DNA of 64,000 nucleotides, from assembly GCF_022045235.1 (NCBI RefSeq), contig NW_027266275.1, positions 55,490,001 through 55,554,000 on the forward strand, read 5' to 3'. The position numbers and the translations under genes were made by a program. This DNA comes from Haliotis cracherodii (lineage: Eukaryota). This document shows positions 6,512 through 27,400 of this stretch, piece after piece. Every line of letters begins with the position of its first letter. Position 1 is the stretch's first letter. Below the pieces are notes generated by a model, which saw nothing but the letters and a program-made list of their open reading frames with translations, had not been told where the DNA came from and searched no databases.

Positions 6512-9500
6512 TCAAAAAAGATCAACAAGTGAAGAGGTGTCACTCTTTTGTGGCTCAACTTCTGTGGAAGGAGGTGGTTTTTCAAACATATCTAACAATG
6601 CTGATTGGTCAGATTCTTTGGTGTCAGCAGCTGATTGGCTCAAGTCTTGAGAAGATGAAAAATCTAGTGAAGATCCGAACATGTCAGCCGAGGTGCCACT
6701 GTTTGCCCGAGATGGTGCCTCAGAACCAGCCTGCACAAAGTCTAACAACATCCCAGAAACTGTCATGGGGCTTTGTTCGGCAGCGCCACTACCTAATTTA
6801 CTACCAGAGTTAAAATCAAACATGTCACCAGTCTCAAGTTGACTTGGATCAACCTGCAATGTCAGGCCAAAGGGATCACTGTCTGCTGTCTGACCGGTCT
6901 CTACTGAAGGGAACGTATTTGATGTGCTGAGATTTGGAACAGTATCATTCTGAGAAAGGGCTGTCATGCCAAATGGATCACTGTCTGCAATTTGACTGGC
7001 CTCTACTGAGGGGTTTGGTTCAACACTACAAGGAACAGTCTTGTCCTGGGAAGATGAAAGGCCAAATGGATTAATATTTACTTTGTTTCCTATTACTGAA
7101 GGGAATGAACGTGCTGCACCCAGATTTGGAACAGTGTTCTCACCAATAGCAGACTTCAGACCAAATGGATCACTGTCTTCTGTTTGTCCAGTCTCCACTG
7201 AGGGGAATGCATCTGATGCCTCTAGATTTGAAACAGTGTTCTCACCAGTGGCAGATGTCATGCCAAATGGATCACTGTCTCCTGTTTGTACAGTCTCCAC
7301 TGTTGGGAATGCATCTGATGCCTCTAGATTTGGAACAATGTTCTCACCAATGGCAGATGTCAGGCCAAATGGATCACTGTCTGCTGTTTGTTCAGTCTCC
7401 ACTGAGGGGAATGCATCTGATGCCTCTAGATTTGGAACAATGTTCTCACCAGTGCCAGGTGTCAGGCCAAACGGATCACTGTCTTCTGTTTGTACAGTCT
7501 CCACTGAGGGGAATGCATCTGGTGCCTCTAGATTTGGAGCAGTGTTCTCACCAGATGTCAGGCCAAATGGATCACTGTCTGCTGTTTGTACAGTCTCCAC
7601 TGAGGTGAATGCATCTGATGCTTCTAGATTTGGAACAGTGTTCTCACCAGTAGCAGATGTCAGGCCAAATGGATCACTGTCTGCTGTTTGTACAGTCTCC
7701 ACTGAGGGGAATGCATCTGGTGCCTCTAGATTTGGAGCAGTGTTCTCACCAGTAGCAGATGTCAGACCAAATGGATCACTGTCTTGTGTCTGTCCAGTCT
7801 CTACTGAGGGGAATGCATCTGGTGCCTCTAGATTTGGAGCAGTGTTCTCACCAGTAGCAGATGTCAGGCCAAATGGATCACTGTCTGCTGTTTGTACAGT
7901 CTCTACTGAGGGGAATGCATCTGGTGCCTCTAGATTTGGAGCAGTGTTCTCTCCAGATGTCAGGCCAAATGGATCACTGTCTGCTGTTTGTACAGTCTCC
8001 ACCGAGGTGAATGCATCTGATGCTTCAAGATTTGGAGCAGTTTTCTCACCAGTAGCAGGTGTCAGGCCAAATGGATCACTGTCTGCTGTTTTTCCAGTCT
8101 CCACCAAGGTGAATGCATCTGATGCTTCAAGATTTGGAACAGTGTCCTCACCAGTAGCAGATGACAGGCCAAATGGATCACTGTCTGCTGTTTGTACAGT
8201 CTCCGCCAAGGTGAATGCATCTGATGCTTCAAGATTTGGAGCAGTTTTCTCACCAGCATCAGATGTCAGGCCAAATGGATCACTGTCTGCTGTTTTTCCA
8301 GTCTCCACCAAGGTGAATGCATCTGATGCTTCAAGATTTGGAACAGTGTCCTCACCAGTAGCAGGTGTCAGGCCAAATGGATCACTGTCTGCTGTTTGTA
8401 CAGTCTCAGCCAAGGTGAATGCATCTGATGCTTCAAGATTTGGAGCAGTTTTCTCACCAGCATCAGATGTCAGGCCAAATGGATCACTGTCTTCTGTTTG
8501 TCCAGTCTCCACTGAGGGGAATACATCTGATGCCTCTAGATTTGGAACAGTGTTCTCACCAGTAGCAGATGACAGGCCAAATGGATCACTGTCTGCTGTT
8601 TGTACAGTCTCCACCAAGGTGAATGCATCTGATGCTTCAAGATTTTGAGCAGTGTTCTCACCAGTACCAGATGTCAGGCCAAATGGATCACTGTCTTCTG
8701 TTTGTTCAGTCTCCACTGAGGGGAATGCATCTGATGCCTCTAGATTTGGAGCAGTGTTCTCACCAGTAGCAGATGTCAGGCCAAATGGATCACTGTCTGC
8801 TGTTTGTACAGTCTCCACTGAGGGGAATGCATCTGGTGCCTCTAGATTTGGAGCAGTGTTCTCACCAGTAGCAGATGTCAGACCAAATGGATCACTGTCT
8901 TGTGTCTGTCCAGTCTCTACTGAGGGGAATGCATCTGGTGCCTCTAGATTTGGAGCAGTGTTCTCACCAGTAGCAGATGTCAGACCAAATGGATCACTGT
9001 CTGCTGTTTGTACAGTCTCTACTGAGGGGAATGCATCTGGTGCCTCTAGATTTGGAGCAGTGTTCTCACCAGATGTCAGGCCAAATGGATCACTGTCTGC
9101 TGTTTGTACAGTCTCCACCGAGGTGAATGCATCTGATGCTTCAAGATTTGGAGCAGTTTTCTCACCAGTAGCAGGTGTCAGGCCAAATGGATCACTGTCT
9201 GCTGTTTTTCCAGTCTCCACCAAGGTGAATGCATCTGATTCTTCAAGATTTGGAGCAGTTTTCTCACCAGCATCAGATGTCAGGCCAAATGGATCACTGT
9301 CTTCTGTTTGTCCAGTCTCCACTGAGGGGAAAGCATCTGATGCCTCTAGATTTGGAACAGTGTTCTCACCAGTAGCAGATGTCAGGCCAAATGGATCACT
9401 GTCTGCTGTTTGTACAGTCTCCACTGAGGGGAATGCATCTGGTGCCTCTAGATTTGGAGCAGTGTTCTCACCAGTAGCAGATGTCAGACCAAATGGATCA

Positions 9501-12500
9501 CTGTCTTGTGTCTGTCCAGTCTCTACTGAGGGGAATGCATCTGGTGCCTCTAGATTTGGAGCAGTGTTCTCACCAGTAGCAGATGTCAGGCCAAATGGAT
9601 CACTGTCTGCTGTTTGTACAGTCTCTACTGAGGGGAATGCATCTGGTGCCTCTAGATTTGGAGCAGTGTTCTCACCAGATGTCAGGCCAAATGGATCACT
9701 GTCTGCTGTTTGTACAGTCTCCACCGAGGTGAATGCATCTGATGCTTCAAGATTTGGAGCAGTTTTCTCACCAGTAGCAGGTGTCAGGCCAAATGGATCA
9801 CTGTCTGCTGTTTTTCCAGTCTCCACCAAGGTGAATGCATCTGATGCTTCAAGATTTGGAACAGTGTCCTCACCAGTAGCAGATGACAGGCCAAATGGAT
9901 CACTGTCTGCTGTTTGTACAGTCTCCGCCAAGGTGAATGCATCTGATGCTTCAAGATTTGGAGCAGTTTTCTCACCAGCATCAGATGTCAGGCCAAATGG
10001 ATCACTGTCTGCTGTTTTTCCAGTCTCCACCAAGGTGAATGCATCTGATGCTTCAAGATTTGGAACAGTGTCCTCACCAGTAGCAGGTGTCAGGCCAAAT
10101 GGATCACTGTCTGCTGTTTGTACAGTCTCCGCCAAGGTGAATGCATCTGATGCTTCAAGATTTGGAGCAGTTTTCTCACCAGCATCAGATGTCAGGCCAA
10201 ATGGATCACTGTCTGCTGTTTGTACAGTCTCCACTGAGGGGAAAGCATCTGATGCCTCTAGATTTGGAACAGTGTTCTCACCAGTAGCAGATGTCAGGCC
10301 AAATGGATCACTGTCTGCTGTTTGTACAGTCTCCACCAAGGTGAATGCATCTGATGCTTCAAGATTTTGAGCAGTGTTCTCACCAGTACCAGATGTCAGG
10401 CCAAATGGATCACTGTCTTCTGTTTGTTCAGTCTCCACTGAGGGGAATGCATCTGATGCCTCTAGATTTGGAGCAGTGTTCTCACCAGTAGCAGATGTCA
10501 GGCCAAATGGATCACTGTCTGCTGTTTGTACAGTCTCCACTGAGGGGAATGCATCTGGTGCCTCTAGATTTGGAGCAGTGTTCTCACCAGTAGCAGATGT
10601 CAGACCAAATGGATCACTGTCTTGTGTCTGTCCAGTCTCTACTGAGGGGAATGCATCTGGTGCCTCTAGATTTGGAGCAGTGTTCTCACCAGTAGCAGAT
10701 GTCAGGCCAAATGGATCACTGTCTGCTGTTTGTACAGTCTCTACTGAGGGGAATGCATCTGGTGCCTCTAGATTTGGAGCAGTGTTCTCACCAGATGTCA
10801 GGCCAAATGGATCACTGTCTGCTGTTTGTACAGTCTCCACCGAGGTGAATGCATCTGATGCTTCAAGATTTGGAGCAGTTTTCTCACCAGTAGCAGGTGT
10901 CAGGCCAAATGGATCACTGTCTGCTGTTTTTCCAGTCTCCACCAAGGTGAATGCATCTGATGCTTCAAGATTTGGAGCAGTTTTCTCACCAGCATCAGAT
11001 GTCAGGCCAAATGGATCACTGTCTTCTGTTTGTCCAGTCTCCACTGAGGGGAAAGCATCTGATGCCTCTAGATTTGGAACAGTGTTCTCACCAGTAGCAG
11101 ATGACAGGCCAAATGGATCACCGTCTGCTGTTTGTACAGTCTCCACCAAGGTGAATGCATCTGATGCTTCAAGATTTTGAGCAGTGTTCTCACAAGTACC
11201 AGATGTCAGGCCAAATGGATCACTGTCTTCTGTTTGTCCAGTCTCCACTGAGGGGAAAGCATCTGATGCCTCTAGATTTGGAACAATGTTCTCATCAGTA
11301 CCAGATGTCTGGCCAAATGGATCACTGTCTGCTGTTTGTTCAGTCTCCACTGAGGGGAAAGCATCTGATGCCTCTAGATTTGGAACAGTGTTCTCACCAG
11401 ATGTCAGGCCAAATGGATCACTATCTGCTGTTTGTACAGTCTCCACTGAGGGGAATGCATCTGATGCCTCTAGATTTGGAGCAGTGTTCTCACCAGTAGC
11501 AGATGTCAGACCAAATGGATCACTGTCTTGTGTCTGTCCAGTCTCCACTGAGGGGAATGCATCTGGTGCCTCTAGATTTGGAAAAGCGTTCACATTAGTG
11601 GCAGATGTCAGGCCAAATGGATCATTGTCTTCTGTCTGTCCAGTCTCCACTGAGGGGAATGCATCTGATGCCTCAAGATGTTGAGCAGTGTTCTCACCAG
11701 TAGCAGATGTCAAACCAAATGGATCACTGTCTGCTGTTTGTACAGTCTCCACTGAGGGGAATACATCTGATGCCTCTAGATTTGGAACAGTGTTCTCACC
11801 AGATGTCAGGCCAAATGGATCACTGTCTCCTGTTTGTTCAGTCTCCACCAAGGTGAATGCATCTGATGCTTCAAGATTTGGAACAGTGTTCTCACCAGTG
11901 GCAGATGTCAGGCTAAATGGATCACTGTCTTCTGTTTGTCCAGTCTCCACTGAGGGGAATGCATCTGATGCTTCTAGATTTGGAACAATGTTCTCACCAG
12001 TAGCAGACTTCAGACCAAATGGATCACTGTCTTCTGTTTGTACAGTCTCCACTGAAGGGAATGCATCCGATGCCTCTAGATTTGGAGCAGTGTTCTCTCC
12101 AGATGTCAGGCAAAATGGATCACTGTCTCCTGTTTGTTCAGTCTCCACTGAGGGGAATGCATCTGATGCCTCTACATTTGAAACAGTGTTCCCACCAGTG
12201 GCAGATGTCATGCCAAATGGATCACTGTCTGCTGTTTGTACAGTTTCCACTGAGGGGAATGCATCTGATGCCTCTAGATTTGGAACAGTGTTCTCACCAG
12301 ATGTCAAGCCAAATGGATCACTGTCTGCTGTTTGTACAGTCGCCACTGAGGGGAATGTATCTGATGCCTCTAGATTTGGAGCAGTGTTCTCACCAGTAGC
12401 AGATGTCAGACCAAATGGATCACTGTCTTGTGTCTGTCCAGTCTCCACTGAGGGGAATGCATCTGGTGCCTCTAGATTTGGAACAGCGTTCACATTAGTG

Positions 12501-15500
12501 GCAGATGTCAGGTCAAATGGATCATGGTCTTCTGTCTGTCCAGTCTCCACTGAGGGGAATGCATCTGATGCCTCAAGATTTTGAGCAGTGTTCTCACCAG
12601 TACCAGATGTCAGACCAAATGGATCACTGTCTGCTGTTTGTACAGTCTCCACCGAGGGGAATGCATCTGATGTCTCAAGATTTGGAACAGTGTTCTCACC
12701 AGATGTCAAGCCAAATGGATCACTGTCTCCTGTTTGTTCAGTCTCCACTGAGGGGAAAGCATCTGATGCCTCTAGATTTGGAACAGTGTTCTCAGCAGAT
12801 GTCAAGCCAAATGGATCACTGTCTGCTGTTTGTTCAGTCTCCACTGAGGGGAATGCATCTGATGCCTCTAGATTTGGAACAGTGTTCTCACCAGATGTCA
12901 AGCCAAATGGATCACTGTCTGCTGTTTGTACAGTCTCCACTGAGGGGAATGCATCTGATGCCTCTAGATTTTGAGCAGTGTTCTCTCCAGATGTCAGGCC
13001 AAATGGATCACTGTCTCCTGTTTGTTCAGTCTCCACTGAGGGGAATGCATCTGATGCCTCTACATTTGAAACAGTGTTCTCACCAGTGGCAGATGTCAGG
13101 CCAAATTGATCACTGTCTGCTGTTTGTACAGTCTCCACCAAGGGGAATGCATCTGATGCCTCTAGATTTGGAACAGTGTTCTCACCAGATGTCAGGCCAA
13201 ATGGATCACTGTCTGCTGTTTGTACAGTCGCCACTGAGGTGAATGCATCTGATGCCTCTAGATTTGGAACACCGTTCTCACCAGCGTCAGATGTCAGGCC
13301 AAATGGATCACTGTCTGCTGTTTGTACAGTCTCCACTGAGGGGAATGCATCTGATGCTTCAAGATTTGGAACAGTGTCCTCACCAGTAGCAGATGTCAGG
13401 CCAAATGGATCACTGTCTGCTGTTTGTTCAGTCTCCACTGAGGGGAATGCATCTGATGCCTCTAGATTTTGAGCAGTGTTCTCTCCAGATGTCAGGCCAA
13501 ATGGATGACTGTCTCCTGTTTGTTCAGTCTCCACTGAGGGGAATGCATCTGATGCCTCTAGATTTGAAACAGTGTTCTCACCAGTGGCAGATGTCAGGCC
13601 AAATGGATCACTGTCTGCTGTTTGTACAGTCTCCACCGAGGGGAATGCATCTGATGCCTCTAGATTTGGAACAGTGTTCTCACCAGATGTCAAGCCAAAT
13701 GGATCACTGTCTCCTGTTTGTACAGTCGCCACTGAGGGGAATGCATCTGATGCCTCTAGATTTGGAACAGTGTTCTCACCAGCGTCAGATGTCAAGCCAA
13801 ATGGATCACTGTCTGCTGTTTGTTCAGTCTCCACTGAGGGGAATGTATCTGATGTCTCAAGATTTGGAACAGTGTCCTCACCAGATGTCAAGCCAAATGG
13901 TTCACTGTCTACTGTTTGTACAGTCTCCACTGAGAGGAATGCATCTGATGCCTCTAGATTTGGAGCATTTTTCTCACCAGTGGCAGGTGTCAGGCTAAAT
14001 GGATCACGGTCTCCCGTTTGTACAGTCTCCACTGAGGGGAATGCATCTGATGCCTCTAGATTTGGAACACCGTTCTCACCAGCGTCAGATGCCAGGCCAA
14101 ATGATTCACTGTCTACTGTTTGTACAGTCTCCACTGAGAGGAATGCATCTGATGCCTCTAGATTTGGAGCAGTGTTCTCACCAGTGGCAGGTGTCAGGCT
14201 AAATGGATCACTGTCTCCTGTTTGTACAGTCTCCACTGAGGGGAATACATCTGATGCTTCAAGATTTGGAACAGTGTCCTCACCAGATGCCAGGCCAAAT
14301 GGTTCACTGTCTACTGTTTGTACAGTCTCCACTGAGGGGAATACATCTGATGCTTCAAGATTTGGAACAGTGTCCTCACCAGATGCCAGGCCAAATGGTT
14401 CACTGTCTACTGTTTGTACAGTCTCCACTGACGGGAATGCATCATGGACAGGGTCTGCTTCAGATGTTAAGTCATCAATACCTGTGGCTTGATTGTTAAT
14501 ATGTGTAATGGTATTAGATGGCTGACTTGTTTTAATGTCCTCAGTAGGTGATATGCTGACAATGCCCTCTGATATGATCACTTGTGCAGCATCAGATACA
14601 GTAGAATCTGCCATCATATCCTGACTTGATGGATGCATATCTTTTAGGTCTGAAGAAACATTTTGATTAGGTTTCAAAGTGTCTTCTTCTGTTTGACTTG
14701 TAGCTATTGGTGGTGACATACATAACACATCAGTGTCTATGTTAATTTCTGCAATGGTGACTGGAGAAGCTGTGTTTAATTCCCCTTTAGTCTCAGACAT
14801 ACCAAATTCATCATTGTCTATTTCTAGACCCTCCTGAGAGCTTGATTGAGACTGAATGTCTGGTGCAAACTTAAAAGTGCCCGCATCTTGAGGACTTTTG
14901 TGATTTTCATCCGAAGGTAAATCAAGGAATGCTGCAGATTCTTGTGAGTCAGTTAATGAAGAATCTGGAAAATCAATAATGCTCTGACCTAAATTACTTT
15001 CGTTTGAGCCATCACTGTAAAACTTTGTTTGTTTCTCTTCCTCTGATGCACCAAGGACTAGAAATTCATCTCCTCTTTCTTCAACAGTTTCACCATCATT
15101 AGCTACTTCAGTGTTTTCTGTGAACTGTGAATCTGACTGAGTTTCACTGGTTTCACTGATGTCACCGAGAAATCCTTGTTCTCCTACGGAATTGGAGATT
15201 TCAACAAAGTCATCCAATAAGGAATCAGTGGACACAGCACTACCATCACCTTGTTGACTCACTACCACTTGTTCTGATGTTGTCATACCAAGGTCCTCAA
15301 AATCATTGAGAGAGTTATCACTTCCTGCTTCAGAAACATCAGAAGCCCACGACACCTCTTCTGGGGCATCATTTTGTTCTGAAGTTCTTTGTTTCAAGGT
15401 GTCCTTTCCAAGGATGATTGCTTGGCCAAAGTCATCAACATTGCTAGGTTCAAAAAAATTTGATGTCATGCCTGATGAACCAGAAACTTCTGCGGTGCTC

Positions 15501-18481
15501 TCTTTTGCATCTATGCTTATGTCAGGATGAGATGTGTGATCAGCAAGGCAAGTTAACTGCTCAGAATCGGGGACTGAGGGTAAATCATTGGGTACTGGGA
15601 TTTGCTCAAAACCTTGAAGGCCAGTGAAGTCACTGTTCTCGCTAGATGGAACCTGCTGTGCAATATTAACACCAAGGAGTTGATCTTGAGGCTTTGAAGA
15701 CTCATCAAGAATCTTGTCTTTATCAATTAACTGCTCAGATACCGAGGGTAAATCATCTGGCACAGAGATTTGTTCCAAATCTTCAAGGCCAGTGAAGTCA
15801 CTGTCCTTGCTAGGTGGTAGCTGATGCTGTTCTGGAGACATGTCTGGAAGAAGGGCATCAGGCCTGAAGGCATGGATTTCCTTTTCTGTGTCTGTTTCAT
15901 CAATAGCATCTTCAGTCAAAATGCTTGAAATTGAGGTGGCTGGAATTTCATCATTATCAAAGGCTTGCACTGGTGATAAGTTGTCATAAAAAATATCTGC
16001 TTGGAAATTGGAAGGTTTCACAGATACATCATTGTCTTGTGTGATCAGACTGCCTGGTGCATCACTACCTTTTTCAATCACTGCAGATTGATCTGTCACC
16101 AAACCCTCAAACACATCAGTTTGATTTACAGTTTGTTGACTGACCATTGTCTGAACATCCTCCTCCATCTCACTACTAGAAGAACTTAGTTCCTGACCTA
16201 AGACATCATGATCATCAACCTTGGTCTGTTCAATGGCCATCGGGCTCTGAGAGTAAAGGCCAATCTCAGAAACAATGCCCTCTGAGTCACCCTCAGTAAC
16301 AGCATCATTGTAATGTATTGGTCCTGGACCTGATATCACATCAGCTGCTTTGTCTGTTCCACCTATGGATGCGTTGGTCTCTGCACCAATTTGTGAGATG
16401 TGGTCTACAGATTTATCCTCAGTGTTTATTCCCTTTTGCAACAGAATGTGGTGTCCTACGTCTGTTTTCCCATCTAATAAATCTTGCTTTTCAGCATTTG
16501 CTGCAGTATTTGAGGTGTTTGGATAATCTTTAGCAGTTATTTCTAATTCATTCTTATCACTTATGGTATCAAGTACAAGATCTGTGTCTGAATGTCTAAA
16601 AACTGTCTCAAAGTCTTCCTTTGGGCTATTTGATTCTGTGCTCAATGTTTGTTTCTCCAAAGCAGAAAATGTGTCATTGTCCTTTTCTGTGTCAACTAAA
16701 ACTAGACTTCCACCTGAAATACCTGCATCATCATGAGATTCAACATCACCTGTCAAACCCTCATCTCCAATGCCATAAGCATCTGTGGGTGACATATCTA
16801 GGGTGGCAGTGGTTCCACCATGTGGCATGGATTCCCGTACAGCATCTGTTGCTGGATTTCCAATCTCAACAGATGCTGAAATGCTTGGAGACGAGTTAGA
16901 TAGCACACTATCCAGTGGCTTACACTCAACGGTAATTTCTGATTCATTCAACTCATCCATTGAATATGCTGGTGATTCAGTGATGTTGTCAACATCTGAT
17001 GCAGTCTCAACCATGTCAAATGAAGTATTATCTGATTCATAAGTTTCCTTCCCTTGTGGTGACTCTTGTGGTTCAATGGTAAAAGAAAAACTCTCTTCAT
17101 TTGTAATGTCACTGCCTTCTTGTTCAACAGATGCTTCTGAGTCTGCATGAACATCTGCAAAAGCAGAGTCACCTATTGTGTTTTGATTGGACAAAGCAGT
17201 ACTGACACAGGAAGGTTCTGTAACATCAGGTTTGTCTGCAGGATGCGTCTCAACATCTGGAGAAGTCTGTGACACAGAATCCTCATCTGACAAGTCAGAG
17301 AGAGGAGGCTCAGCAACTTCTGAACCACCAACAGGTGTGGGTGTTGTTTCAGCATCTTCAAGGGAAACATGTATCTCATCATGAATGCCACTAGACCCGC
17401 ATGTTTGACTCACTTCTACATCTTGGCAATCAGGTGGGGCCTCATAGCTACCTTTTAACAAGTCAGGTGCCTCAGTGTGAATACTTGGGACATCAATATT
17501 AACAAAACTATCACCCAACTGTGTCAAACTGTCTGTCATTATGTTATCCTCTGTGGTTTGTAATGCAGCAGAAGCTGTGTTACTCATGGACGGAATCTGG
17601 GTGGCATCAACACTTTGTCCGTCTCCAGGATAGCTGAGCACTTGGAAAGAATCTGCAGCATCTAGATCACTGAAGCTCACTGTGCTAGACTCAGGATCAG
17701 TAAACAGCTGGGTTTTTTCATGCTCATCAGAACCTGACCTATCTGTTAAGGCTGGCTCTGTGAGGGTATCCGATCGGCCAGGATCAGAATCTGATTCCTC
17801 ATCCTCATTTGGAACACTCTCACTCTTGATAAACTCATTCTTTTCATTTTCATGAGAATCTAATTCTGACTTATCAGTATGAATAACACAGGAACTATCA
17901 ACTTCTGAACTAACAAGGTCACTGCTTGATGCAGTCGGACTGACAACAGTTTCCTTACTAAAAGAGTCATCGCCAACAGCCCTCACAAGAGCTGCATTTG
18001 TTGTTGTAGGGGCAACAGGTAGTGTTGGAATGTCTATGCCAGTGAAAAAGGCCGCAACGGAAGGCACCTCGGGTTTATGAGACGTATCAATAGTATCAGG
18101 ACTTACAAAATCATCAAAAAGATTAACATCACTACTTTTGCCCAAAGACTCAAAACTGAACTCATTGTACTGATTATCAGATATGTTTGAAACTTCACCT
18201 GAGCCAAATAAATCAATACCATGCTGACTTGCCAACTCTTCAAATGCAGATTCCAGATCTTCTGGAACAGGTTTTTTCTTTGGTTGACCTTGCCTGCTTA
18301 CATTACCCTTCCCTTTATCAATCCCCCCTAACCCTTCCCAATTATCAGAGGGATCAGGTGACACTTCAGTCTGTTGCTCCCCAGGCAGTTTCTGATTGGT
18401 CACGTCTGCTTCTAAAACTGATGCAGATGACACATATGTTTCCACTGAGAGGGTTGGATCAGTTGTGCCCAAAGATGGTTG
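6512..18481 (-). CDS. LMTK: LMTK terminal coding exon (11,970 nt incl. stop): acidic disordered tail with DPF repeat array
   Basis: 3,986-aa uninterrupted ORF; acceptor ttattccttttcag directly before 18481, phase 0 matching exon 10; the ORF-track start is a TTG rather than an ATG; composition like exon 10. Confidence 0.8.
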   Translation of the reverse strand, partial: QPSLGTTDPTLSVETYVSSASVLEADVTNQKLPGEQQTEVSPDPSDNWEGLGGIDKGKGNVSRQGQPKKKPVPEDLESAFEELASQHGIDLFGSGEVSNISDNQYNEFSFESLGKSSDVNLFDDFVSPDTIDTSHKPEVPSVAAFFTGIDIPTLPVAPTTTNAALVRAVGDDSFSKETVVSPTASSSDLVSSEVDSSCVIHTDKSELDSHENEKNEFIKSESVPNEDEESDSDPGRSDTLTEPALTDRSGSDEHEKTQLFTDPESSTVSFSDLDAADSFQVLSYPGDGQSVDATQIPSMSNTASAALQTTEDNIMTDSLTQLGDSFVNIDVPSIHTEAPDLLKGSYEAPPDCQDVEVSQTCGSSGIHDEIHVSLEDAETTPTPVGGSEVAEPPLSDLSDEDSVSQTSPDVETHPADKPDVTEPSCVSTALSNQNTIGDSAFADVHADSEASVEQEGSDITNEESFSFTIEPQESPQGKETYESDNTSFDMVETASDVDNITESPAYSMDELNESEITVECKPLDSVLSNSSPSISASVEIGNPATDAVRESMPHGGTTATLDMSPTDAYGIGDEGLTGDVESHDDAGISGGSLVLVDTEKDNDTFSALEKQTLSTESNSPKEDFETVFRHSDTDLVLDTISDKNELEITAKDYPNTSNTAANAEKQDLLDGKTDVGHHILLQKGINTEDKSVDHISQIGAETNASIGGTDKAADVISGPGPIHYNDAVTEGDSEGIVSEIGLYSQSPMAIEQTKVDDHDVLGQELSSSSSEMEEDVQTMVSQQTVNQTDVFEGLVTDQSAVIEKGSDAPGSLITQDNDVSVKPSNFQADIFYDNLSPVQAFDNDEIPATSISSILTEDAIDETDTEKEIHAFRPDALLPDMSPEQHQLPPSKDSDFTGLEDLEQISVPDDLPSVSEQLIDKDKILDESSKPQDQLLGVNIAQQVPSSENSDFTGLQGFEQIPVPNDLPSVPDSEQLTCLADHTSHPDISIDAKESTAEVSGSSGMTSNFFEPSNVDDFGQAIILGKDTLKQRTSEQNDAPEEVSWASDVSEAGSDNSLNDFEDLGMTTSEQVVVSQQGDGSAVSTDSLLDDFVEISNSVGEQGFLGDISETSETQSDSQFTENTEVANDGETVEERGDEFLVLGASEEEKQTKFYSDGSNESNLGQSIIDFPDSSLTDSQESAAFLDLPSDENHKSPQDAGTFKFAPDIQSQSSSQEGLEIDNDEFGMSETKGELNTASPVTIAEINIDTDVLCMSPPIATSQTEEDTLKPNQNVSSDLKDMHPSSQDMMADSTVSDAAQVIISEGIVSISPTEDIKTSQPSNTITHINNQATGIDDLTSEADPVHDAFPSVETVQTVDSEPFGLASGEDTVPNLEASDVFPSVETVQTVDSEPFGLASGEDTVPNLEASDVFPSVETVQTGDSDPFSLTPATGENTAPNLEASDAFLSVETVQTVDSESFGLASDAGENGVPNLEASDAFPSVETVQTGDRDPFSLTPATGEKNAPNLEASDAFLSVETVQTVDSEPFGLTSGEDTVPNLETSDTFPSVETEQTADSDPFGLTSDAGENTVPNLEASDAFPSVATVQTGDSDPFGLTSGENTVPNLEASDAFPSVETVQTADSDPFGLTSATGENTVSNLEASDAFPSVETEQTGDSHPFGLTSGENTAQNLEASDAFPSVETEQTADSDPFGLTSATGEDTVPNLEASDAFPSVETVQTADSDPFGLTSDAGENGVPNLEASDAFTSVATVQTADSDPFGLTSGENTVPNLEASDAFPLVETVQTADSDQFGLTSATGENTVSNVEASDAFPSVETEQTGDSDPFGLTSGENTAQNLEASDAFPSVETVQTADSDPFGLTSGENTVPNLEASDAFPSVETEQTADSDPFGLTSAENTVPNLEASDAFPSVETEQTGDSDPFGLTSGENTVPNLETSDAFPSVETVQTADSDPFGLTSGTGENTAQNLEASDAFPSVETGQTEDHDPFDLTSATNVNAVPNLEAPDAFPSVETGQTQDSDPFGLTSATGENTAPNLEASDTFPSVATVQTADSDPFGLTSGENTVPNLEASDAFPSVETVQTADSDPFGMTSATGGNTVSNVEASDAFPSVETEQTGDSDPFCLTSGENTAPNLEASDAFPSVETVQTEDSDPFGLKSATGENIVPNLEASDAFPSVETGQTEDSDPFSLTSATGENTVPNLEASDAFTLVETEQTGDSDPFGLTSGENTVPNLEASDVFPSVETVQTADSDPFGLTSATGENTAQHLEASDAFPSVETGQTEDNDPFGLTSATNVNAFPNLEAPDAFPSVETGQTQDSDPFGLTSATGENTAPNLEASDAFPSVETVQTADSDPFGLTSGENTVPNLEASDAFPSVETEQTADSDPFGQTSGTDENIVPNLEASDAFPSVETGQTEDSDPFGLTSGTCENTAQNLEASDAFTLVETVQTADGDPFGLSSATGENTVPNLEASDAFPSVETGQTEDSDPFGLTSDAGEKTAPNLEASDAFTLVETGKTADSDPFGLTPATGEKTAPNLEASDAFTSVETVQTADSDPFGLTSGENTAPNLEAPDAFPSVETVQTADSDPFGLTSATGENTAPNLEAPDAFPSVETGQTQDSDPFGLTSATGENTAPNLEAPDAFPSVETVQTADSDPFGLTSATGENTAPNLEASDAFPSVETEQTEDSDPFGLTSGTGENTAQNLEASDAFTLVETVQTADSDPFGLTSATGENTVPNLEASDAFPSVETVQTADSDPFGLTSDAGEKTAPNLEASDAFTLAETVQTADSDPFGLTPATGEDTVPNLEASDAFTLVETGKTADSDPFGLTSDAGEKTAPNLEASDAFTLAETVQTADSDPFGLSSATGEDTVPNLEASDAFTLVETGKTADSDPFGLTPATGEKTAPNLEASDAFTSVETVQTADSDPFGLTSGENTAPNLEAPDAFPSVETVQTADSDPFGLTSATGENTAPNLEAPDAFPSVETGQTQDSDPFGLTSATGENTAPNLEAPDAFPSVETVQTADSDPFGLTSATGENTVPNLEASDAFPSVETGQTEDSDPFGLTSDAGEKTAPNLEESDAFTLVETGKTADSDPFGLTPATGEKTAPNLEASDAFTSVETVQTADSDPFGLTSGENTAPNLEAPDAFPSVETVQTADSDPFGLTSATGENTAPNLEAPDAFPSVETGQTQDSDPFGLTSATGENTAPNLEAPDAFPSVETVQTADSDPFGLTSATGENTAPNLEASDAFPSVETEQTEDSDPFGLTSGTGENTAQNLEASDAFTLVETVQTADSDPFGLSSATGENTVPNLEASDVFPSVETGQTEDSDPFGLTSDAGEKTAPNLEASDAFTLAETVQTADSDPFGLTPATGEDTVPNLEASDAFTLVETGKTADSDPFGLTSDAGEKTAPNLEASDAFTLAETVQTADSDPFGLSSATGEDTVPNLEASDAFTLVETGKTADSDPFGLTPATGEKTAPNLEASDAFTSVETVQTADSDPFGLTSGENTAPNLEAPDAFPSVETVQTADSDPFGLTSATGENTAPNLEAPDAFPSVETGQTQDSDPFGLTSATGENTAPNLEAPDAFPSVETVQTADSDPFGLTSATGENTVPNLEASDAFTSVETVQTADSDPFGLTSGENTAPNLEAPDAFPSVETVQTEDSDPFGLTPGTGENIVPNLEASDAFPSVETEQTADSDPFGLTSAIGENIVPNLEASDAFPTVETVQTGDSDPFGMTSATGENTVSNLEASDAFPSVETGQTEDSDPFGLKSAIGENTVPNLGAARSFPSVIGNKVNINPFGLSSSQDKTVPCSVEPNPSVEASQIADSDPFGMTALSQNDTVPNLSTSNTFPSVETGQTADSDPFGLTLQVDPSQLETGDMFDFNSGSKLGSGAAEQSPMTVSGMLLDFVQAGSEAPSRANSGTSADMFGSSLDFSSSQDLSQSAADTKESDQSALLDMFEKPPPSTEVEPQKSDTSSLVDLF

Positions 18482-21400
18482 CTGAAAAGGAATAAAGCGG
18501 TAATGTGAGAAAATGAATTGGACAAAATGAAGGAATGCACTATGGTAAATACTTTAAATCATCAGAGTTCAGAAGACACTAACGCACCCACCATTTAATA
18601 TTTTGTATTACTTTACTGGAACAAATGATATTTTTTTTTTTTTTAAAAAAGGCCCTTCACAGTTCATCAAACAGTCAGTCCCTTGATGATTAATTGAGAT
18701 TTGCATTTGTGATTTTAACATTAACTCTTTGGAAACCTCTGTTCATTGAAAACTAGATCCAAATCTGACAAACCTGATAAGCAATCTTAATGATTAAAAT
18801 AAACAATGTATATACTGCATTACTTCCATAAACCATTATGATAAATTCAATGCTTGACACGGGGTTAATGTTGTCCACTTTAGACATAATACCCAAGCCA
18901 AATTATGGTTCAGAAATCAGGCAGAAAGATAAAAAGAACTTCTCATGCAATCAAAACAAGTTATATCAATAAAGAATTAAAACGAACTGATAAACTTTCT
19001 TCATCTCAACATGAGTAAAGTGATGCTTGTACAACTGAGCAATTCTATTTCTTCTTTTTTTCAATTTAGGTAATTATTTCATTTCATTTGTATCAGCTAA
19101 AAATGTCATTTAAAAGTAAAATTACTCAATGACCTTTCTTTTGAAATAGTCTGACATGATATCCTGAATATAGGATTGTGATTCAACTTGCATAGGTAGG
19201 AGTACATTGCAACACAACTAAGCTAAGGCTACTTTACTACTTGCATCTGTGAAAGGGAGTTGAGTTTAACATTGCTTTCAACAGTATTTCAGTCATATCT
19301 TGTCGTGTCTCCCTGGAGTGGGAATAAAGACCCAGATAACACAGGTGAAAGACCTTGGATAGATTGCAGTTTCCAGATACCTTCTGCCATTTTGGTAAGG
19401 GGTGTGACCTTAGATAGATTGCAGTTTCCAGATACCTTCTGCCATTTTGGTAAGGGGTGTGACCTTAGATAGATTGCAGTTTCCAGATACCTTCTGCCAT
19501 TTTGGTAAGGGGTGTGACCTTAGATAGATTGCGTTTCCAGATACCTTCTGCCATTTTGGCTGCCATTTTGGTAAGGGGTGTGACCTTAGATAGATTGCAG
19601 TTTCCAGATACCTTCTGCCATTTTGGTAAGGGGTGTGACCTTAGATAGATTGCAGTTTCCAGATACCTTCTGCCATTTTGGTAAGGGGTGTGACCTTGGG
19701 TTAGATTGCAGTTTCCAGATACCTTCTGCTAAATTGGTAATGGGGGGTGACCTTAGATAGATTGCAGTTTCCAGATACCTTCTGCCATTTTGGTAATGGG
19801 GGGTGACCTTGGATAGATTGCAGTTTCCAGATACCTTCTGCCATTTTGGTAAGGGGGGGGGGGGGGGGTGACCTTGGATAGATTGCAGTTTCCAGATACC
19901 TTCTGCCATTTTGGTAAGGGGGGGGGGTGACCTTGGATAGATTGCAGTTTCCAGATACCTTCTGCCCTTTTGGTAAGGGGGGGTGACCTTGGATAGATTG
20001 CAGTTTCCAGATACCTTCTGCCATTTGGGTAAGGGGGGGTGACCTTGGATAGATTGCTGTTTCCAGATACCTTCTGCCATTTTGGTAAGGGGGTGTGCAC
20101 AAGCTCCTTCCCAAATAATGCTTTCATAGTTTTTCAGCTGCCATTTATAGCAGTCTCGTGGAATTAATAGGGCGTTTGTGGGGCTGGCCCCTGACAAAAA
20201 TCCTTGTGATAAAAGCTTTCATAAGCAGTTGTCATTATTAGCTGCCAAAGGAAATTAAATATACGTCTGTTGAAATGAGGCCGCAGTGCATGTAACTGCT
20301 CCTGCTGCATGCCATTGTAAAACTTCCATTTTCGAGCAATGCTGATGTCCAATTTCCAATGTTTCTAAATGGCTTTGATATCCAATTTCAACGTTTAATC
20401 ATATTAAACAATGCAAAGTCAAACTGTCACTTTTCTGCTTATGTTTAGCTTTATCCCCTACTTTTCAAATAGCCATGCCATGGCGTGCCTCTGTATTAGA
20501 AACATTTAACAAGTATGGCCACAGGAATCCAGTACAATGCAAATGGTCCAAGGCCCTAACCACCTGTATTGGTGCTCACAGACCAAGGATCAAAGTTAGA
20601 CTCAAACCCAGAGCTAGTGGAACTAGTCCAGCCAAAGGGGATAACATGAAGTGAGACAGGTTTTAAACCATTACCACTTTAGTGAAACCAACAAGCACGG
20701 GTATGGTGCTGAGAAAAACTTCAAACATAATCAGGGCAAAACTGGGTTTCCAATCCAAGATCAAAGGTATCTGGCATGCTTAACTCTGTATTGCCAAATG
20801 TGGCACCTTACTGGGCCCCTTTAGCGATTGCAGCCCTCTGAGCCACCTTACGCCACCCTTGCACCACCCTTGCACCTTTATTATTAGAATGACTACTGGT
20901 ATTAATATTAGACATTGGAATAGAATCATAATATTAGACAGGTGATAATCCTTGATAAGAGAGAAACAGTAAGCATGCCAACCCCTAAATAGAAGAGCCA
21001 ATCAACAAAGTGACCCATGAAAGAGTATGTAGATTCCAGTGTTATTTAAGAAAAAGAACTCCAACAAAACAGAACTTGAAATAATTCATAGATGTGGCAC
21101 AAGGATTAAACTACATTCCAAAGTCAATACAAGAAACAGTGTTAGGTTGGTTAAAGGCTCACAAGATGAACTGAAGGAACTAAAGCTGACTAGAAAGCAT
21201 TCATACATTAGGCAGACAAGCCAGAGGACCCTAGCATACCATGTACCTGAAGTAGCCAACAAAGCTTGTTTAAGCTTTACTAGAACTGGGAACCTGAAAA
21301 GAACAGGATTGGTTGCATATTTACTATCACTAACAAATTCCTATCACAGGCGCTAACGAGAACGCTAATGTGCTTTAGTGTGTGTGGCCGATTTTAGGCT

Positions 21401-24400
21401 GTCAAAATGCAGTCATAGCTGAACTATTGCTGAGCGTGGAATTAAACAACAAACAACAAAACTGCAGCAGTCTTTCAGCCATATTATAGAGAGAGCACTT
21501 TGTATGTGTACGTATGTTTGGACTCGAACTCTTTGTCTTAAGCTGCAGAGCAAACACAAATACAATCATACACTTAAATTCACGGCCAGGACAGTTAATG
21601 TAATAGTTTTGAACTCTAAAACAGATGAAAAACGTTACTCATATTTCAGTCTTAGTTCAAAGTAGAAAAGTTCATTTACAAATCTTAACGTAATCATACT
21701 TTATGTAAACAATGAAATCATAGACTACGTACTTCATTTTGTGAAAAAATATCCATTAGCATTGAGTTGTTGTTTTACCTGTTATTACTAGTAATTACGA
21801 TGCATTGTGTCTCTCAACAAAACAACCAACATGGCATGCCTATGTCTATGTAAGCATCTAACTAAATCAAATGACACATGATTAAACCCTTATTATGACA
21901 CAGGAGAAACTAGATCTTCAGATATTTCTCATCAAAGTACATCTCTTCAATGCATGAAATACCCCACAGGTATTTCTGACTCACCTACAAGCAATATTCT
22001 GAAAACACTAGTTGAAAAGATATATGCATATCTAATTTCCTTTAAGTAAATTACAAAAGGGAGATAACTCTAATGATCACCAAACATCATTTGTAATGAT
22101 ACAAAAAGGCTCAGTAATTAATTCATAATAAACAGTAACAAAAACAACATGTTCACATTCTTAGATATCAACAATAAAATATTTCTGTACCAATTGAGGT
22201 ATTATTATAACCAAGAGGGGATATGCATGCATAGTTCTGACTCTTTTATCATGCAAAATATTTCCCTGAATCAGTTCAGAATAATTGTATTCTAAATGGT
22301 AAATATTATGTTAAAAAAGTGTGCCATGAAAATAGAAAAATCTCACCCATGCCTTATGTTTATCAGTATAAAAGATGAATTCTTAGGAAAACAACATAGA
22401 TTAGTATTAGAATCCAAGCCACGGTTAATGAATAGACGAAGCATGCATACAACTATTTTTGTTCTAACCCATTCTATAATCATGCTGTTTCGTTTGCTGA
22501 TGATCAAGATTTTTCATTTAACGAAACCTGACTAACTAGGGATCTTCATCTGACAAGGAAGTCACTTAAAACAGAACATCACCATGGTTACAAATAATTT
22601 AACACAACAAAAAATCTTCATCATTATCATCACTATCAAAATATGTTAACATGATGTTTATTTAGCTATTTTAGTATGTGTATGGATATGTATCTTTGAC
22701 ATATTCATTAACTGCATAACCCGATCGTCTAAAACGTAATAATAATCATAGTTTCAGTCATGGTTAACTTGTCACAAAGGCCATTAAATAGAACTGCAGA
22801 AATATATCGCCAGTGTAGGGCTAGAAGAGATCTTACAAAATCTCTGAAAAAAGAAGTACATCCATCCACAAAATATACATAATTGTCTTTATTTCATCTT
22901 CTATTACCACAGGTCAATGCCCATTATCGTCATGATGAGGAGGATGTAGATGACAATGATGACGATGATGATGATGAAAATGAAATGCTGTTAATAACAC
23001 ATTGCACAGTTGTGGAACCTAACAATGTTGAACACAAAACAATATTGATTTACTTTTTCCATTTCATTGATAAATAAATACTTTGTTTTCAATTAATGCT
23101 TTTAATTGATGAAAATACGAAGGGATTTTGAAAACCTACATTTAGCAGTGCACATCATTGTTATTTAGGATTATTAAGTATTCGAAACAGATAAACAATA
23201 CACAATTAGTAGTTGTGGGAGAAAACTAAACACCAAAATTGTGCCATTAGTATCCCACTGTGCAATGTGCCACACCGAACCCATTGTTACCACAGACTGG
23301 TTACCATGGTTACAACATTGTGACGAGGAGACCCATTGATCTACAACAGCAAGCAGCAAATGAAACCAAAAAGGACGCAGCATGCTAGTGTTACGATTTG
23401 ACCGAGAAGCATACCTGAATAAACAAAGAGTCGTCAGTCCGAGAGCCGGACGCTAAATCTTCCACTTTGTCATGCAATCCTGCTGGGGCTGTTTCAGTTA
23501 GGCGAGATTCAGGCTGGTTAGATTCTGGGCTCAGATTAGTATCTGAGTCGGAGTCCATGTCTACGTTATCAAATAATGAGTAAAAAGGTGTCCGGGTATT
23601 TTTTGTGTTAGTAAAGGAGTCGTGTATACTACGATTAGTGATGAGATCAGATACATATGAACGAGACGTCCGGCCTCGTTGTCGCTTTACCTCCGAAGTT
23701 GAGGCAGTCGAGAGACGTATGGAGGGATCACTAGTTCCGAGAATATCCGGGCTGACACTTTCAAGCGGAGACTGGATGCTGCCGCTGCTCCTGTAGCTGA
23801 GGGAGTCCCCATCCATCAACCAATCAGACATGTCAAAACTAGCCTTAGGAGTGTTACTAGTCCTATCACGGCCCACAATAGACTCGCCCATAAAATCGTC
23901 CCACTCAAAATTATCTTGAGAGGCGAACACATCGTCAAAGTGGGCATCAAATTTAAGATCTATGGAACTTGTATCGGAGGGTGAGGGCATCACGTCCTCT
24001 GGAATGGTTTCTAATGGCGGCCGTTCAAACACTCTTGGAGAACTGACACCTTTAGAGAGGTAGAGTTCACTAGCAAGTCTAAGGTCAAGATCCTCATCTG
24101 AATCTGTCACTTCATCACTTATGTTATCCTGGCGTTCATCCAAATTATCGGAATCATCGTCGTCTGCATCAAGATCTGTCACCTGAATGTGCCGTCTTCT
24201 CTCCTCACATACATAAGAACTGCCACTGTTTGAAGAGTCAGACGAACTATCGGATTCAGAGGAACTACTTTTACTTTCATCATCACTCACATATTCTACA
24301 CATGTACCTACCTTCTCACCGGAGGGCGCTGCTCCATCAAAGGAACTGGGCGCATCTGCCAGCTCTGGGGAACTCACACACACAGCACTGTCTGACGAAG

Positions 24401-27400
24401 ATTCAGCCCCACTTGTGTTTTCCTCATTAGAGTCTGATTTGACAGACTGATCTGCAGGAGTTTCATATCCGGATGTGCCATTGTCCAGAGCAAGGTCTGA
24501 CGGCTTCACATTCTCACCTTTTGAAACAGGTTCATCCGCTAATCTCTCATTGGATTGGAATGTACTCGGAATTATACTCTCAGCCTGAAAGTTACGAGAC
24601 GACACTAAATCTATATCATTAGAAAGAAAATTCTGTGGTTCTACATCAGTGTCACGTTTGGTGTCAGATGAAGCCGTCTGCTTACCTGCAGGATCAGCTT
24701 TGCTGTCCGGCTCATCAAATCCTGAGACAGGTGACTCTGCATCACCTTTAGATGAAGATTCACTGAGTAGTGATTGGTTTCCTTTGCCAGGCAACAGCTC
24801 AGCACTAGCATCTGGCTGAGATGACACAGGTTTTATCTGGTCTGCAATATCACCTTGCCCGAACAAATCTGCAAAAGGATCTTTATTGTTTGCAGGTGCT
24901 TGTTCTGGCTTATTCCCCTCTAGTGCTATGTCTGATGCAGGTGTGTTATGCTGATTTTGTACATCTTGGTGAGGTTCCCCAACAGCTTCAAGAATATCCA
25001 GACTGGATGCTGGCTTGGTTGGGGAAACTACAGGTTTTCCTCCCAACAAATCAAACTGATCAGATGACACAGGCAAATCCTCCTCCTTGTCTAATGCTCC
25101 CAGAAGATCTGCAGCTGTATCTTCCTGTGGCACATCAATCAAAACATCAGGTGTCTTCTCCTCTGATGGCACTGGTGAAGCTAAGGAACTGGAATTGCTT
25201 TTGGTTGAAGCTGCTAATGCTACACTGAATTCATCTTCAATTTTTCTACTGGTTCTCGACCCCGATCCTGATTTTTGTTGTTTCTGACTGACATCAGGTT
25301 CAGCTGGGGTTGGTGCCAGGTCCATGATGGGAGTGCTGGTCATGTGAGCAGGCAGTGTATGGCGAGAGGGTGTGGGTAACTGGGCCAGTTTGCCAGCCAA
25401 ACTCGGCTGCATGTTGACAGTAATATGGTCACCATTGGTCACTGAGGTTGACATATTGTCCTCAATTTTCACTGAAAAGAGTTCCTCTGCTTTGGCAGGT
25501 TGATCGGAGACTGGTTGTTGGGGTTCAGGTTTCGGGTCCGGAACAAAGTTGCTGTCAAAGCTAGCTGATGCCGGTCGTGTCTGCTGCTTGTGCTGTGGTT
25601 TGGCCGCCACAATACGTGCCTCGTGGGGTATCATCTGGTTCCATTTCTTTTCAAAGTTCTCTGCCTTAGCTTGATCACCGGCCACAATTTCATACAATCT
25701 CTGTAGCAGACCATGGGCATCCTCTATGCTGGGTCTCTGACCTGGGTTTAGCCAACAGAACAGCATCACCTCCACTCTGAAAGTAAAGGAAACAATTGCA
25801 AACCACATACTCTGTGATAAACCTTCAGAAGAAAATGCTTGAATTGTGGCTCTGACAAGTATAAAAGTCTCAAGCACACAGACTTGTGTACCCAATTTCA
25901 AAGTTTTTTTCTCACACAATCTTCATCTTTTTATCTTACATTATCGAAGTCAAAATGCATCCAGACACTGTACTGCTTCACATCCATATCACAACACACG
26001 TGTTAGAGAAGTTAAGATGTGAGTTATCTCCCCTGGCCAGGTACCCGAGTCCTTAATTAAGTTTTGTAACCCACTGTTTTCCCACTGAGCCAGGTGATGA
26101 AAGCGTAATCAATCTTACATGTCATGACTTCAGTTGTGAGTATACTGCACATGGTCTTTCTCTCCCACGTTTTGATCAAATTCGTTTTATCCCGATGTTT
26201 TCTTATTATTTCTGATATTTCTTGCACTTAGACGGTTCGTAAGTTGGACAAAACACCCCTCCTCAGTTTTGGTTGAAAATGTAAAACCTTTTCCCTTGCT
26301 CCCAGTTTTACGTTTGCAACCAAAACCTCTGATACCTTTTTTATCTTAAAAAACACATTTACAGCCACCAATAAAGCATTTGTGATGAGTTGAGCACACA
26401 AAATAGACTTTCAACATCAAATCAAGTTGTGGTTATGTTGACAATAGGGCCAAATAAGTCCCCCAAGAAGTCAAAAGAGCTTTCTTTAAGGGGAATCTCA
26501 TTTTTAAAAAGTACTTGGATTTGGATCATCATACCCAAATGGATTGGTTGATCACACTATCAACCACAGGTTAGCATGGACTAAACTTGATTGTGATACT
26601 GGCAGTCATTGTCCTCAATACACTATACACATATACATGCTCACATTCTGTCCTTGAACGGTATGTTGACGTCAGGCTCTGGGAGTTTGACCATGCGGTC
26701 TGCAATGACCGTCTGCAGCACCTGGTCGTCGGCCATGTTGCCATACGGCTGCTTGCCAAACATCAGCATCTCCCACAGCAGCACCCCGAACGACCTGAAG
26801 AAGACAGTCCTCATCATCACTGCCTTTCATCTGGGCGACTCAACATCATCTGAAGATGCCACTCATTTCAGACTAGCAGTTTATGTAAATTAACTTGGAG
26901 GAAAAAGTCATACATTTTCACTTGTCTTGCTTGCAGGACTTTAATTCACTAATTATGTGGGACAAAAATTTTGTCAGAAGCTAATGAAAATAAGTAAAGT
27001 TAGTTACATGGTTGCCCTGCGCCATGACTGGAATTTATATATACATTTTTTGTTACTGAAAGCCCAGGCAAGTCTAGATCAAACTAAACCAAGTCTAATT
27101 TCCTCAATTCCACATATGAAAACAGCTGAAGTGGAAAGGTTCTTTTTAAGAACAAAAATATATAATTATTTTTAAAAAATGTCTCCATTGACTAAGTGTT
27201 AGTCTATGAAACCAGCAGAAGAAGAACGGTTCTTTCGAAGAAAAAAAAACATTATTATTGAAAAGGAATCTTTTGATGACTAAGTGATAGTCTATTAACA
27301 TGGCTGAGCAATCTAGCAAAGGATAGGGTTTGGCTGTGGGAGTAACTAGTTCAGACTAACAGTCAAAACTATCGAGGTCAAGTACATATTATTTGAACAT

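Follow-up and report, generated by a model that had tools for sequence, protein, structure and literature searches.

We analysed a window of 64,000 nucleotides (nt) from the abalone Haliotis cracherodii (RefSeq assembly GCF_022045235.1, contig NW_027266275.1, positions 55,490,001 to 55,554,000 of the forward strand). The window contains no N, shows nothing that looks human, and carries, on its minus strand, a kinase gene of the LMTK family whose giant terminal exon encodes a long tandem array of DPF motifs. A preliminary description, made from the letters of this stretch, had proposed an LMTK kinase fused to such an array. The parts of the gene are given below in window positions, with lengths of protein in amino acids (aa). 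Whole-protein comparisons were made with public RefSeq proteins.

34183..34284, minus strand: exon 1 (approximate), with the start codon and the N-terminal membrane anchor MVVVVAVSVVAPLLLLVVVLIKCLGCLRKKEGFK
26644..32471, minus strand: juxtamembrane and kinase exons (tblastn, approximate coordinates)
~32471-32262, minus strand: juxtamembrane exon (tblastn)
31825-31724, minus strand: kinase exon with the G-loop IGTGWFGQV (tblastn, approximate)
31371-31243, 30964-30848 and 29654-29520, minus strand: kinase exons (tblastn, approximate)
29285-29190, minus strand: kinase exon with QDFAARN..KIGDYG (tblastn, approximate)
28742-28620 and 26823-26644, minus strand: kinase exons (tblastn, approximate)
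23415..25776, minus strand: exon 10, 787 aa, end of the kinase domain and constant LMTK tail, with a phase-0 donor (CAG/gtatgc)
21247..21293, minus strand: 47-nt cassette exon with AG/GT borders; contig joints 18481 to 21247 and 21293 to 23415
6512..18481, minus strand: giant terminal exon, one open frame of 3,989 codons plus stop (6514-6512)
14447..18481, minus strand: N-terminal portion of the giant exon, unique and acidic (1,345 aa); its first Met is codon 299
6869..14407, minus strand: DPF array, 76 units of 96 or 102 nt (cut at the PF core)
7591..11147, minus strand: recent internal duplication, in which block 7591-9425 occurs again 1,722 nt (17 units) away and is at least 98.5% identical
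6515..7120, minus strand: degenerate array end and C-terminal tail, with NPF (7072-7064), LLDF, DMF, LLDMF and the terminal SSLVDLF-COOH (6529-6515)

The giant exon begins at a phase-0 acceptor (ttttcag/CAA at 18481) from which its frame is open, and the open reading frame (ORF) within it occupies 6512..18472 of the minus strand and encodes 3,986 aa. Spliced RNA-like contigs of 4.0-6.6 kb span the unique 5' part of this exon. Its product has a net charge of about -699 and only 2% K+R. Exon 10 and the giant exon both have an isoelectric point of about 4 and 33-40% S+T+P+G, and a Pfam search with four tail pieces taken from these two exons returned no family.

Within the array, Tandem Repeats Finder (TRF) reports a period of 102 nt at 7122-14443, with 72.9 copies, 89% matches, 2% indels and a higher-order period of 402 nt. 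When the 76 units are cut at the PF core, 55 measure 34 aa and 19 measure 32 aa, and the remaining two measure 33 and 31 aa. The units have the consensus DSDPFGLTS(AT)GENTxPNLEASDAFPSVETxQTA. On the giant-exon translation we counted 69 DPF, 62 DSDPFG, 3 EPF and a single NPF; the spacing from one DPF to the next is 34 aa in 49 cases and 32 aa in 14. Every unit also holds a second DxF (73 in total: 67 DAF, 4 DVF and 2 DTF), which brings the DxF of the array to 144, and FG is present in every unit as well. The array carries a net charge of about -454, with 0.8% K+R and 19% D+E, and W, Y, C, M and I are nearly absent. In composition-preserving shuffles of the array DPF occurred 1.2 times on average and 6 times at most, compared to 67 observed; since the units are copies of each other, this shows only that DPF belongs to the unit.

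These counts agree with the preliminary description, which had given about 73 tandem units of 32/34 aa with some 69 DPF, one NPF at the degenerate end and indels that all preserve the frame: the NPF lies at 7072-7064, the whole 3,989-codon frame is open, and no frameshift or stop interrupts the 7.3-kb array. That description had overlooked the second DxF of each unit, the duplication of a 1.8-kb block and the 47-nt exon.

The most degenerate, and oldest, units stand at both array ends, and part of the copy number is very recent because the 1.8-kb block (7591-9425) is duplicated at 98.5% identity or more. A four-unit query against the 1.18-Gb genome gave 30 minus-strand (coding-frame) matches, all within the LMTK locus, and the DPF array is unique in this genome. 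AlphaFold2 run on six units as a single sequence gave no confident fold (mean predicted local distance difference test score 49, 0 residues at 70 or above), a model result that counts weakly against a folded repeat domain.

Upstream of the array and on the same strand, the kinase exons encode VVAKVL, PIRWMAPE and CWLNPGQRPS in addition to the motifs listed above, and exon 1 reads MVVVVAVSVVAPLLLLVVVLIKCLGC. We searched the PDB for relatives of the kinase using the H. rubra short isoform, which is 89% identical to H. cracherodii exon 10. LMTK3 (6seq) was the best match, with 233 bits and an E value of 5e-68, and the next was the insulin receptor with 176 bits. The alignment with LMTK3 begins at LMTK3 residue 43, in the membrane anchor, and includes CL.C.R...GFK.FEN; it pairs HQDFAARN with HSDLALRN and VGDYG with IGDYG, and the two proteins share GWFG, a non-RD H-x-D and DYG. 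Kinase affinity, an N-terminal anchor that adjoins the kinase without an extracellular ligand domain, family motifs and a long disordered tail, by which we tested LMTK membership, were all found, and the kinase is the sole domain found in the gene. A PDB sequence search with exon 10 returned nothing. Membership of the family is well supported by these comparisons, which point to the Haliotis LMTK orthologue, and the identity proposed in the preliminary description holds.

The constant tail encoded by exon 10 contains DPFADLF (24881-24861), FDDVF (23939-23925) and FEWDDFMGE (from 23903). The first is a composite in which DPF overlaps FxDxF, and FDDVF is a second FxDxF. FEWDDFMGE (23903-23892) is near WxxFx[DE], and its EWDDF block is kept in the Patella, Gigantopelta, Pomacea and Aplysia orthologues.

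The splicing between exon 10 and the giant exon was followed in the contig sets of four probable RNA runs from four studies, placed on 18000-23800. These contigs derive from RNA because they are spliced, with GT..AG borders on the minus strand. The joint from 18481 to 21247 is present in all four sets and the joint from 21293 to 23415 in one (X4); one 6.6-kb RNA contig (X10) links the giant exon, the cassette and about 2.6 kb further upstream, including exon 10. In the frame that continues from exon 10, the cassette reads VPSSSKA and then a stop. Its second frame contains TAG TAA, and its third frame is open but enters the giant exon out of frame and meets TGA after 7 codons. Since the cassette leads to a stop in all frames, its inclusion ends the kinase protein and turns the giant ORF into a 3' untranslated region. 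The cassette-included mRNA encodes a canonical LMTK of about 1,157 aa without the array, whose C-terminal sequence is ...SLFIQVPSSSKA, ending VPSSSKA. The H. rubra RefSeq isoforms X1 and X3 terminate in VPSSSKA, matching the cassette frame.

The direct joining of exon 10 to the giant exon is seen in RefSeq models of H. rufescens (SLFIQ/QPSL) and H. asinina, and in H. rubra isoform X2, where the fusion uses an alternative donor and coexists with X1 and X3, which include the cassette. Phase 0 is shared by the donor at 23415 and the acceptor at 18481. The first 298 codons of the giant exon contain no Met, and the 24 open codons upstream of the acceptor contain no ATG. Codons 1-100 of the giant exon are nevertheless its best-conserved part, with 83% identity to H. 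asinina, compared to 82% for exon 10 and 48-70% for the remaining giant exon. Translation must therefore enter this Met-less and conserved start from an upstream exon in phase 0. From these sequence comparisons we consider it quite probable that skipping of the cassette yields a real kinase-array fusion.

Four Haliotis gene sets contain the array, which has 69 DPF in the H. cracherodii window, 49 in H. rufescens, 51 in H. asinina and 17 in H. rubra; this orthologue comparison had been proposed in the preliminary description. The unit consensus is identical across the four sets, and each of them maintains an open frame of about 4,000 codons. The H. asinina DPF are spaced by 14, 20, 32 or 34 aa. 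Haliotis RefSeq models supply the closest proteins: H. rufescens XP_048238661.1 (4,372 aa) matches exon 10 at 99% identity and the giant exon at 96-99%, and the fused H. asinina model has 4,214 aa and is named 'uncharacterized protein isoform X2' (RefSeq/UniRef). Exon 10 is 82% identical in H. asinina and 35-39% identical in Patella and Gigantopelta, and the C-terminal tail (6515..7120) is 61-66% identical to those of H. asinina and H. rubra. RefSeq treats the locus as a single gene in H. rufescens and H. asinina and divides it into two in H. rubra (XP_046581876/7/9 plus 'mucin-5AC-like'). Of the RefSeq names used, 'serine-rich adhesin for platelets-like', 'mucin-5AC-like' and 'uncharacterized', the first two reflect composition only.

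The orthologues retrieved from Patella, Gigantopelta, Pomacea, Babylonia, Candidula and Aplysia measure 1,074-1,577 aa and contain 0-1 DPF and no array. Among proteins of 2,405-7,651 aa with an LMTK-like kinase, the array was found in Haliotis only, and the crustacean and psyllid giants have 0-1 DPF. One giant candidate proved a false lead, since it consists of many kinase domains in series. As far as annotated proteomes go, these comparisons make the array an expansion of the Haliotis lineage.

The Haliotis protein ends in SSLVDLF, and the long isoforms of Pomacea and Aplysia in ASLIDF and GSLIDF. BLASTP of the Haliotis C-terminal 202 aa against these long isoforms gave no significant match, and only the terminal SL[IV]D(L)F is common to them. 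In Pomacea, isoform X2 has a 7-aa alternative ending, LHSLKFP, exactly where X1 continues. Because of this alternative ending and the shared terminal motif, the two-ending splice switch may be older than the array.

Weak multivalent motifs in disordered tails are thought to drive the initiation of clathrin coats, with Eps15 and FCHo as the model. The platform of the AP-2 alpha-appendage binds DP[FW] (about 120 µM) and FXDXF, and the beta2 platform binds [DE]nX1-2FXX[FL]XXXR (PMC5694535). Eps15 has 15 DPF that bind AP-2 and FCHo/SGIP (PMC4731787, PMC4921775 and PMC2132690). For vertebrate LMTK3, binding to alpha-adaptin and a role in endocytic traffic have been reported (PMC11550312). In the Haliotis gene, we found ligand motifs of the AP-2 platform as 69 DPF in the tail and as DPFADLF and FDDVF in exon 10. 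The abalone alpha-adaptin ear is itself split over exons, with profile positions 48-93 of PF02296 in one 74-aa open frame.

Near the start of the giant exon, PEDLESAFEELASQHGIDLFGSG (18253-18206) is unchanged in H. asinina. This segment is similar to the helix motif of beta2-appendage ligands, [DE]nX1-2FXX[FL]XXXR, with H replacing R and a DLF following, and is a lead at the motif level only. A conserved ESAFEELASQH-GIDLF segment marks the beginning of the giant exon, and LLDMF...SLVDLF its end.

Taken together, the data are best read as a splice-switched LMTK, and we give a somewhat better than even chance to the array of its long form being an extremely multivalent ligand of the AP-2 alpha (and beta2) appendages, as the motifs suggest. 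A 32/34-aa unit, DSDPFGL plus the second DxF, has expanded in tandem specifically in Haliotis and forms the core of an acidic region of about 4,000 aa. The 47-nt cassette acts as the splice switch: its inclusion gives the LMTK of about 1,157 aa and leaves the giant ORF untranslated, and its skipping, which joins phase 0 to phase 0, would add the giant tail to the membrane-anchored kinase. The array would then engage the platform site of the AP-2 appendage in the manner of the Eps15 DPF domain. With 69 to 144 individually weak sites at a contour spacing of about 12 nm, it could enrich or trap AP-2, together with its partners, at membranes that carry LMTK and so bring them within reach of the kinase. 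Such binding might lead to coat nucleation, AP-2 sequestration or presentation of substrates to the kinase. More tentatively, and with clearly less than an even chance, we propose that the cassette toggles between an ordinary endosomal kinase and an anchored kinase, with 69 DPF and about 73 additional DxF sites, that nucleates, traps or condenses AP-2 and its partners at a defined membrane and phosphorylates them there.

Several observations weigh against a splice-switched kinase with an AP-2-binding tail, and they concern in turn the junction, the evolution of the repeat and the motif itself. The direct joint 23415/18481, taken as the junction in the preliminary description, is absent from the joints listed in all four RNA-like contig sets, although contigs lose minor isoforms and a missing joint is no proof of absence. 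The assembled path takes the stop-bearing cassette in all four, 18481 joining 21247 each time, and direct joining is found in the RefSeq models only. It may be that the skip isoform is of low abundance, is confined to some tissues, or stems from gene models that maximise the ORF. In H. rubra, RefSeq has the giant exon as a separate 'mucin-5AC-like' gene starting at an internal Met. The giant ORF could accordingly lie outside the kinase protein, either translated on its own from that Met or mostly left as untranslated 3' sequence of the short LMTK mRNA. Giant-exon contigs (18000-18481) are also 2.5-4x deeper than exon-10 contigs (23432-23800) in three runs (X1, X4 and X8), and additional transcripts may start downstream of exon 10, but contig depth cannot rank parts of a gene. 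We find a product outside the kinase quite improbable, given that an ORF of about 4,000 codons has been maintained in four species, that the part before codon 299 is the best conserved and has no in-frame ATG upstream, and that the phases match and direct-junction models exist in three species. The separate H. rubra model looks like an annotation artefact. We rejected a mucin identity, which would call for a secreted protein with signal peptide and PTS repeats: the exon lacks a start codon in its first 298 codons, extends a cytoplasmic kinase tail and has acidic repeats. The name looks driven by composition.

The kinase-array fusion being retained as the preferred reading, the next question is what keeps DPF in the repeat. 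Within the array, pN (nonsynonymous differences per site) is 0.042 in DSDPFGL versus 0.113 in the linker, where the ratio to synonymous differences (pN/pS) is 0.95; the linker evolves nearly neutrally. The lower variability of the motif that the preliminary description expected at the codon level is thus seen for DSDPFGL, but for the DPF triplet alone pS is 0.02 and pN 0.03, too few changes for power. In 72 of 72 units the F and D codons do not vary, even at third positions, which is the pattern that young copies give without selection. The copy number differs fourfold between assemblies and may be partly assembly-dependent. These results also fit a tolerated coding minisatellite, in which unequal crossing-over would have multiplied a unit of the disordered tail with an ancestral DPF, the copy number would be functionless and DPF would be kept mainly by the youth and homogenisation of the copies; the near-neutral linker, the 1.8-kb block duplicated at 98.5% or more and the range of 17-69 DPF across species are all in its favour.

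The comparison between species is the stronger evidence for selection. In the H. asinina array, the most diverged, column entropy averages 1.32 bits, yet it falls to 0.51 for DPF, lower than for any other triplet; D is conserved at 0.95, P at 0.92, F at 0.89 and the following G at 0.70 (often D). In half of the H. asinina units, DPF also occurs at the second site, where H. cracherodii has DAF. In the H. rubra array the entropy of DPFGL is zero compared to a mean of 0.91. The lasting PF core with varying flanks, noted before in H. cracherodii, is also found where the units have diverged. Together with one consensus unit in four species and 7.3 kb free of frameshift or stop in any of them, this makes a functionless minisatellite an unlikely explanation, though less so than a product outside the kinase.

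As to the motif itself, DPF is short and weak (about 120 µM, PMC5694535), and a spacing of 34 aa is much wider than that in Eps15. The tail could be made but serve something other than AP-2, as a polyanionic spacer, a Ca2+ buffer, or a ligand of EH domains, of FCHo/SGIP mu-homology domains or of transport receptors. In favour of such roles are the net charge of the array, about -454 with 0.8% K+R, the FG in every unit, and the fact that mu-homology and some EH domains can read DPF as well (PMC4731787 and PMC2238750). On the other side, the acidic residues flanking the motif vary while the motif stays constant, the G after F is conserved at 0.70 in H. asinina against 0.89-0.95 for D-P-F, and mu-homology domains require closely spaced DPF pairs (PMC4731787), whereas the spacing in the arrays is 14-34 aa. 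We therefore hold these roles to be the least probable of the explanations considered. A nucleoporin-like FG-repeat domain was rejected on the same figures, FG not being the conserved core (G 0.70 versus D 0.95, P 0.92 and F 0.89).

The proposed AP-2-directed fusion kinase can be placed among known systems. It is like the vertebrate LMTK1-3, and especially LMTK3, in its N-terminal anchor, juxtamembrane GFK-FEN, GWFG, non-RD H-x-D, DYG and long disordered acidic tail. Unlike LMTK3 (about 1,460 aa), the Haliotis long form measures 4,200 to about 5,140 aa and has the tandem DPF array and the stop-cassette switch. The array also recalls the C-terminal DPF domain of Eps15/Eps15R, which is disordered and has many DPF; those of Eps15, often DPFG or DPFA, bind AP-2 appendages multivalently (PMC4731787, PMC4921775 and PMC2132690). 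Eps15, however, is soluble, with 15 irregular and close DPF, EH domains, a coiled coil and ubiquitin-interacting motifs, while the Haliotis tail repeats DPF 69 times with a fixed period of 32/34 aa, lacks any Pfam domain and has a membrane-anchored kinase at its far end. Membership of the Eps15 family was rejected: EH domains, coiled coil and ubiquitin-interacting motifs were not found, no Pfam family fell on the tail pieces and the kinase is the sole domain. DPFADLF, FDDVF, DLL, DLF/DMF and the FxxLxxxH segment are like the DPW of epsin, the FxDxF and DLL of AP180/amphiphysin and the beta2 helix of ARH/beta-arrestin (definitions in PMC5694535). Unlike in those accessory tails, the Haliotis motifs are single-copy, and the likeness is at the motif level only.

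Our literature search found no paper on mollusc LMTKs and none describing the Haliotis gene models. The sequences are already public, as unnamed or misnamed RefSeq models; what is distinctive is the valency, the regular spacing, the restriction to one lineage and the stop-cassette switch. The 69 DPF are several times the 15 of Eps15, the richest other array met in this work. If AP-2 binding is true, the long form would amount to a naturally occurring 'super-Eps15' joined to an enzyme. The 69 regular DPF and the range of 17-69 between sister species would offer a ready-made valency series for AP-2 clustering, tethered to a membrane kinase and toggled by one small exon. The locus also illustrates clearly how a coding minisatellite has multiplied a short linear motif in a single genus. 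Its annotation is inconsistent in three RefSeq genomes, fused in two and split in one, and it is named 'mucin' or 'adhesin'.

Further repeats surround the gene. A 109-nt satellite at 34241-36092 (minus sense) has 17 copies with 96% matches, each with the LMTK start codon and its first 11 codons (GACATGGTAGTGGTGGTCGCC...). The annotated LMTK ATG lies in the last of these copies; those before it would form short upstream ORFs if they are transcribed. In the intron that separates the cassette from the giant exon, three short stretches, 20522-20716, 19164-19357 and 21298-21491, show very high summed contig depth in all four runs (maximum 43,000 at 20671-20716) with many loose ends, and resemble copies of some abundant element, either an interspersed repeat or small RNA-like. 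The intron also holds a 56-nt tandem repeat of 13 copies at 19351-20097, which in several frames yields repetitive ORFs (MAEGIWKLQSIQGHPP...). At the start of the window, a G-rich 28-nt minisatellite (1007-1986, 35 copies, 90% identity) accounts for the GC of 0.51 and the GC skew of 0.30 in the first 2 kb. Upstream of the gene lie tandem repeats of 40 nt (36082-36787), 128 nt (45493-46172) and 139 nt (49727-50422).

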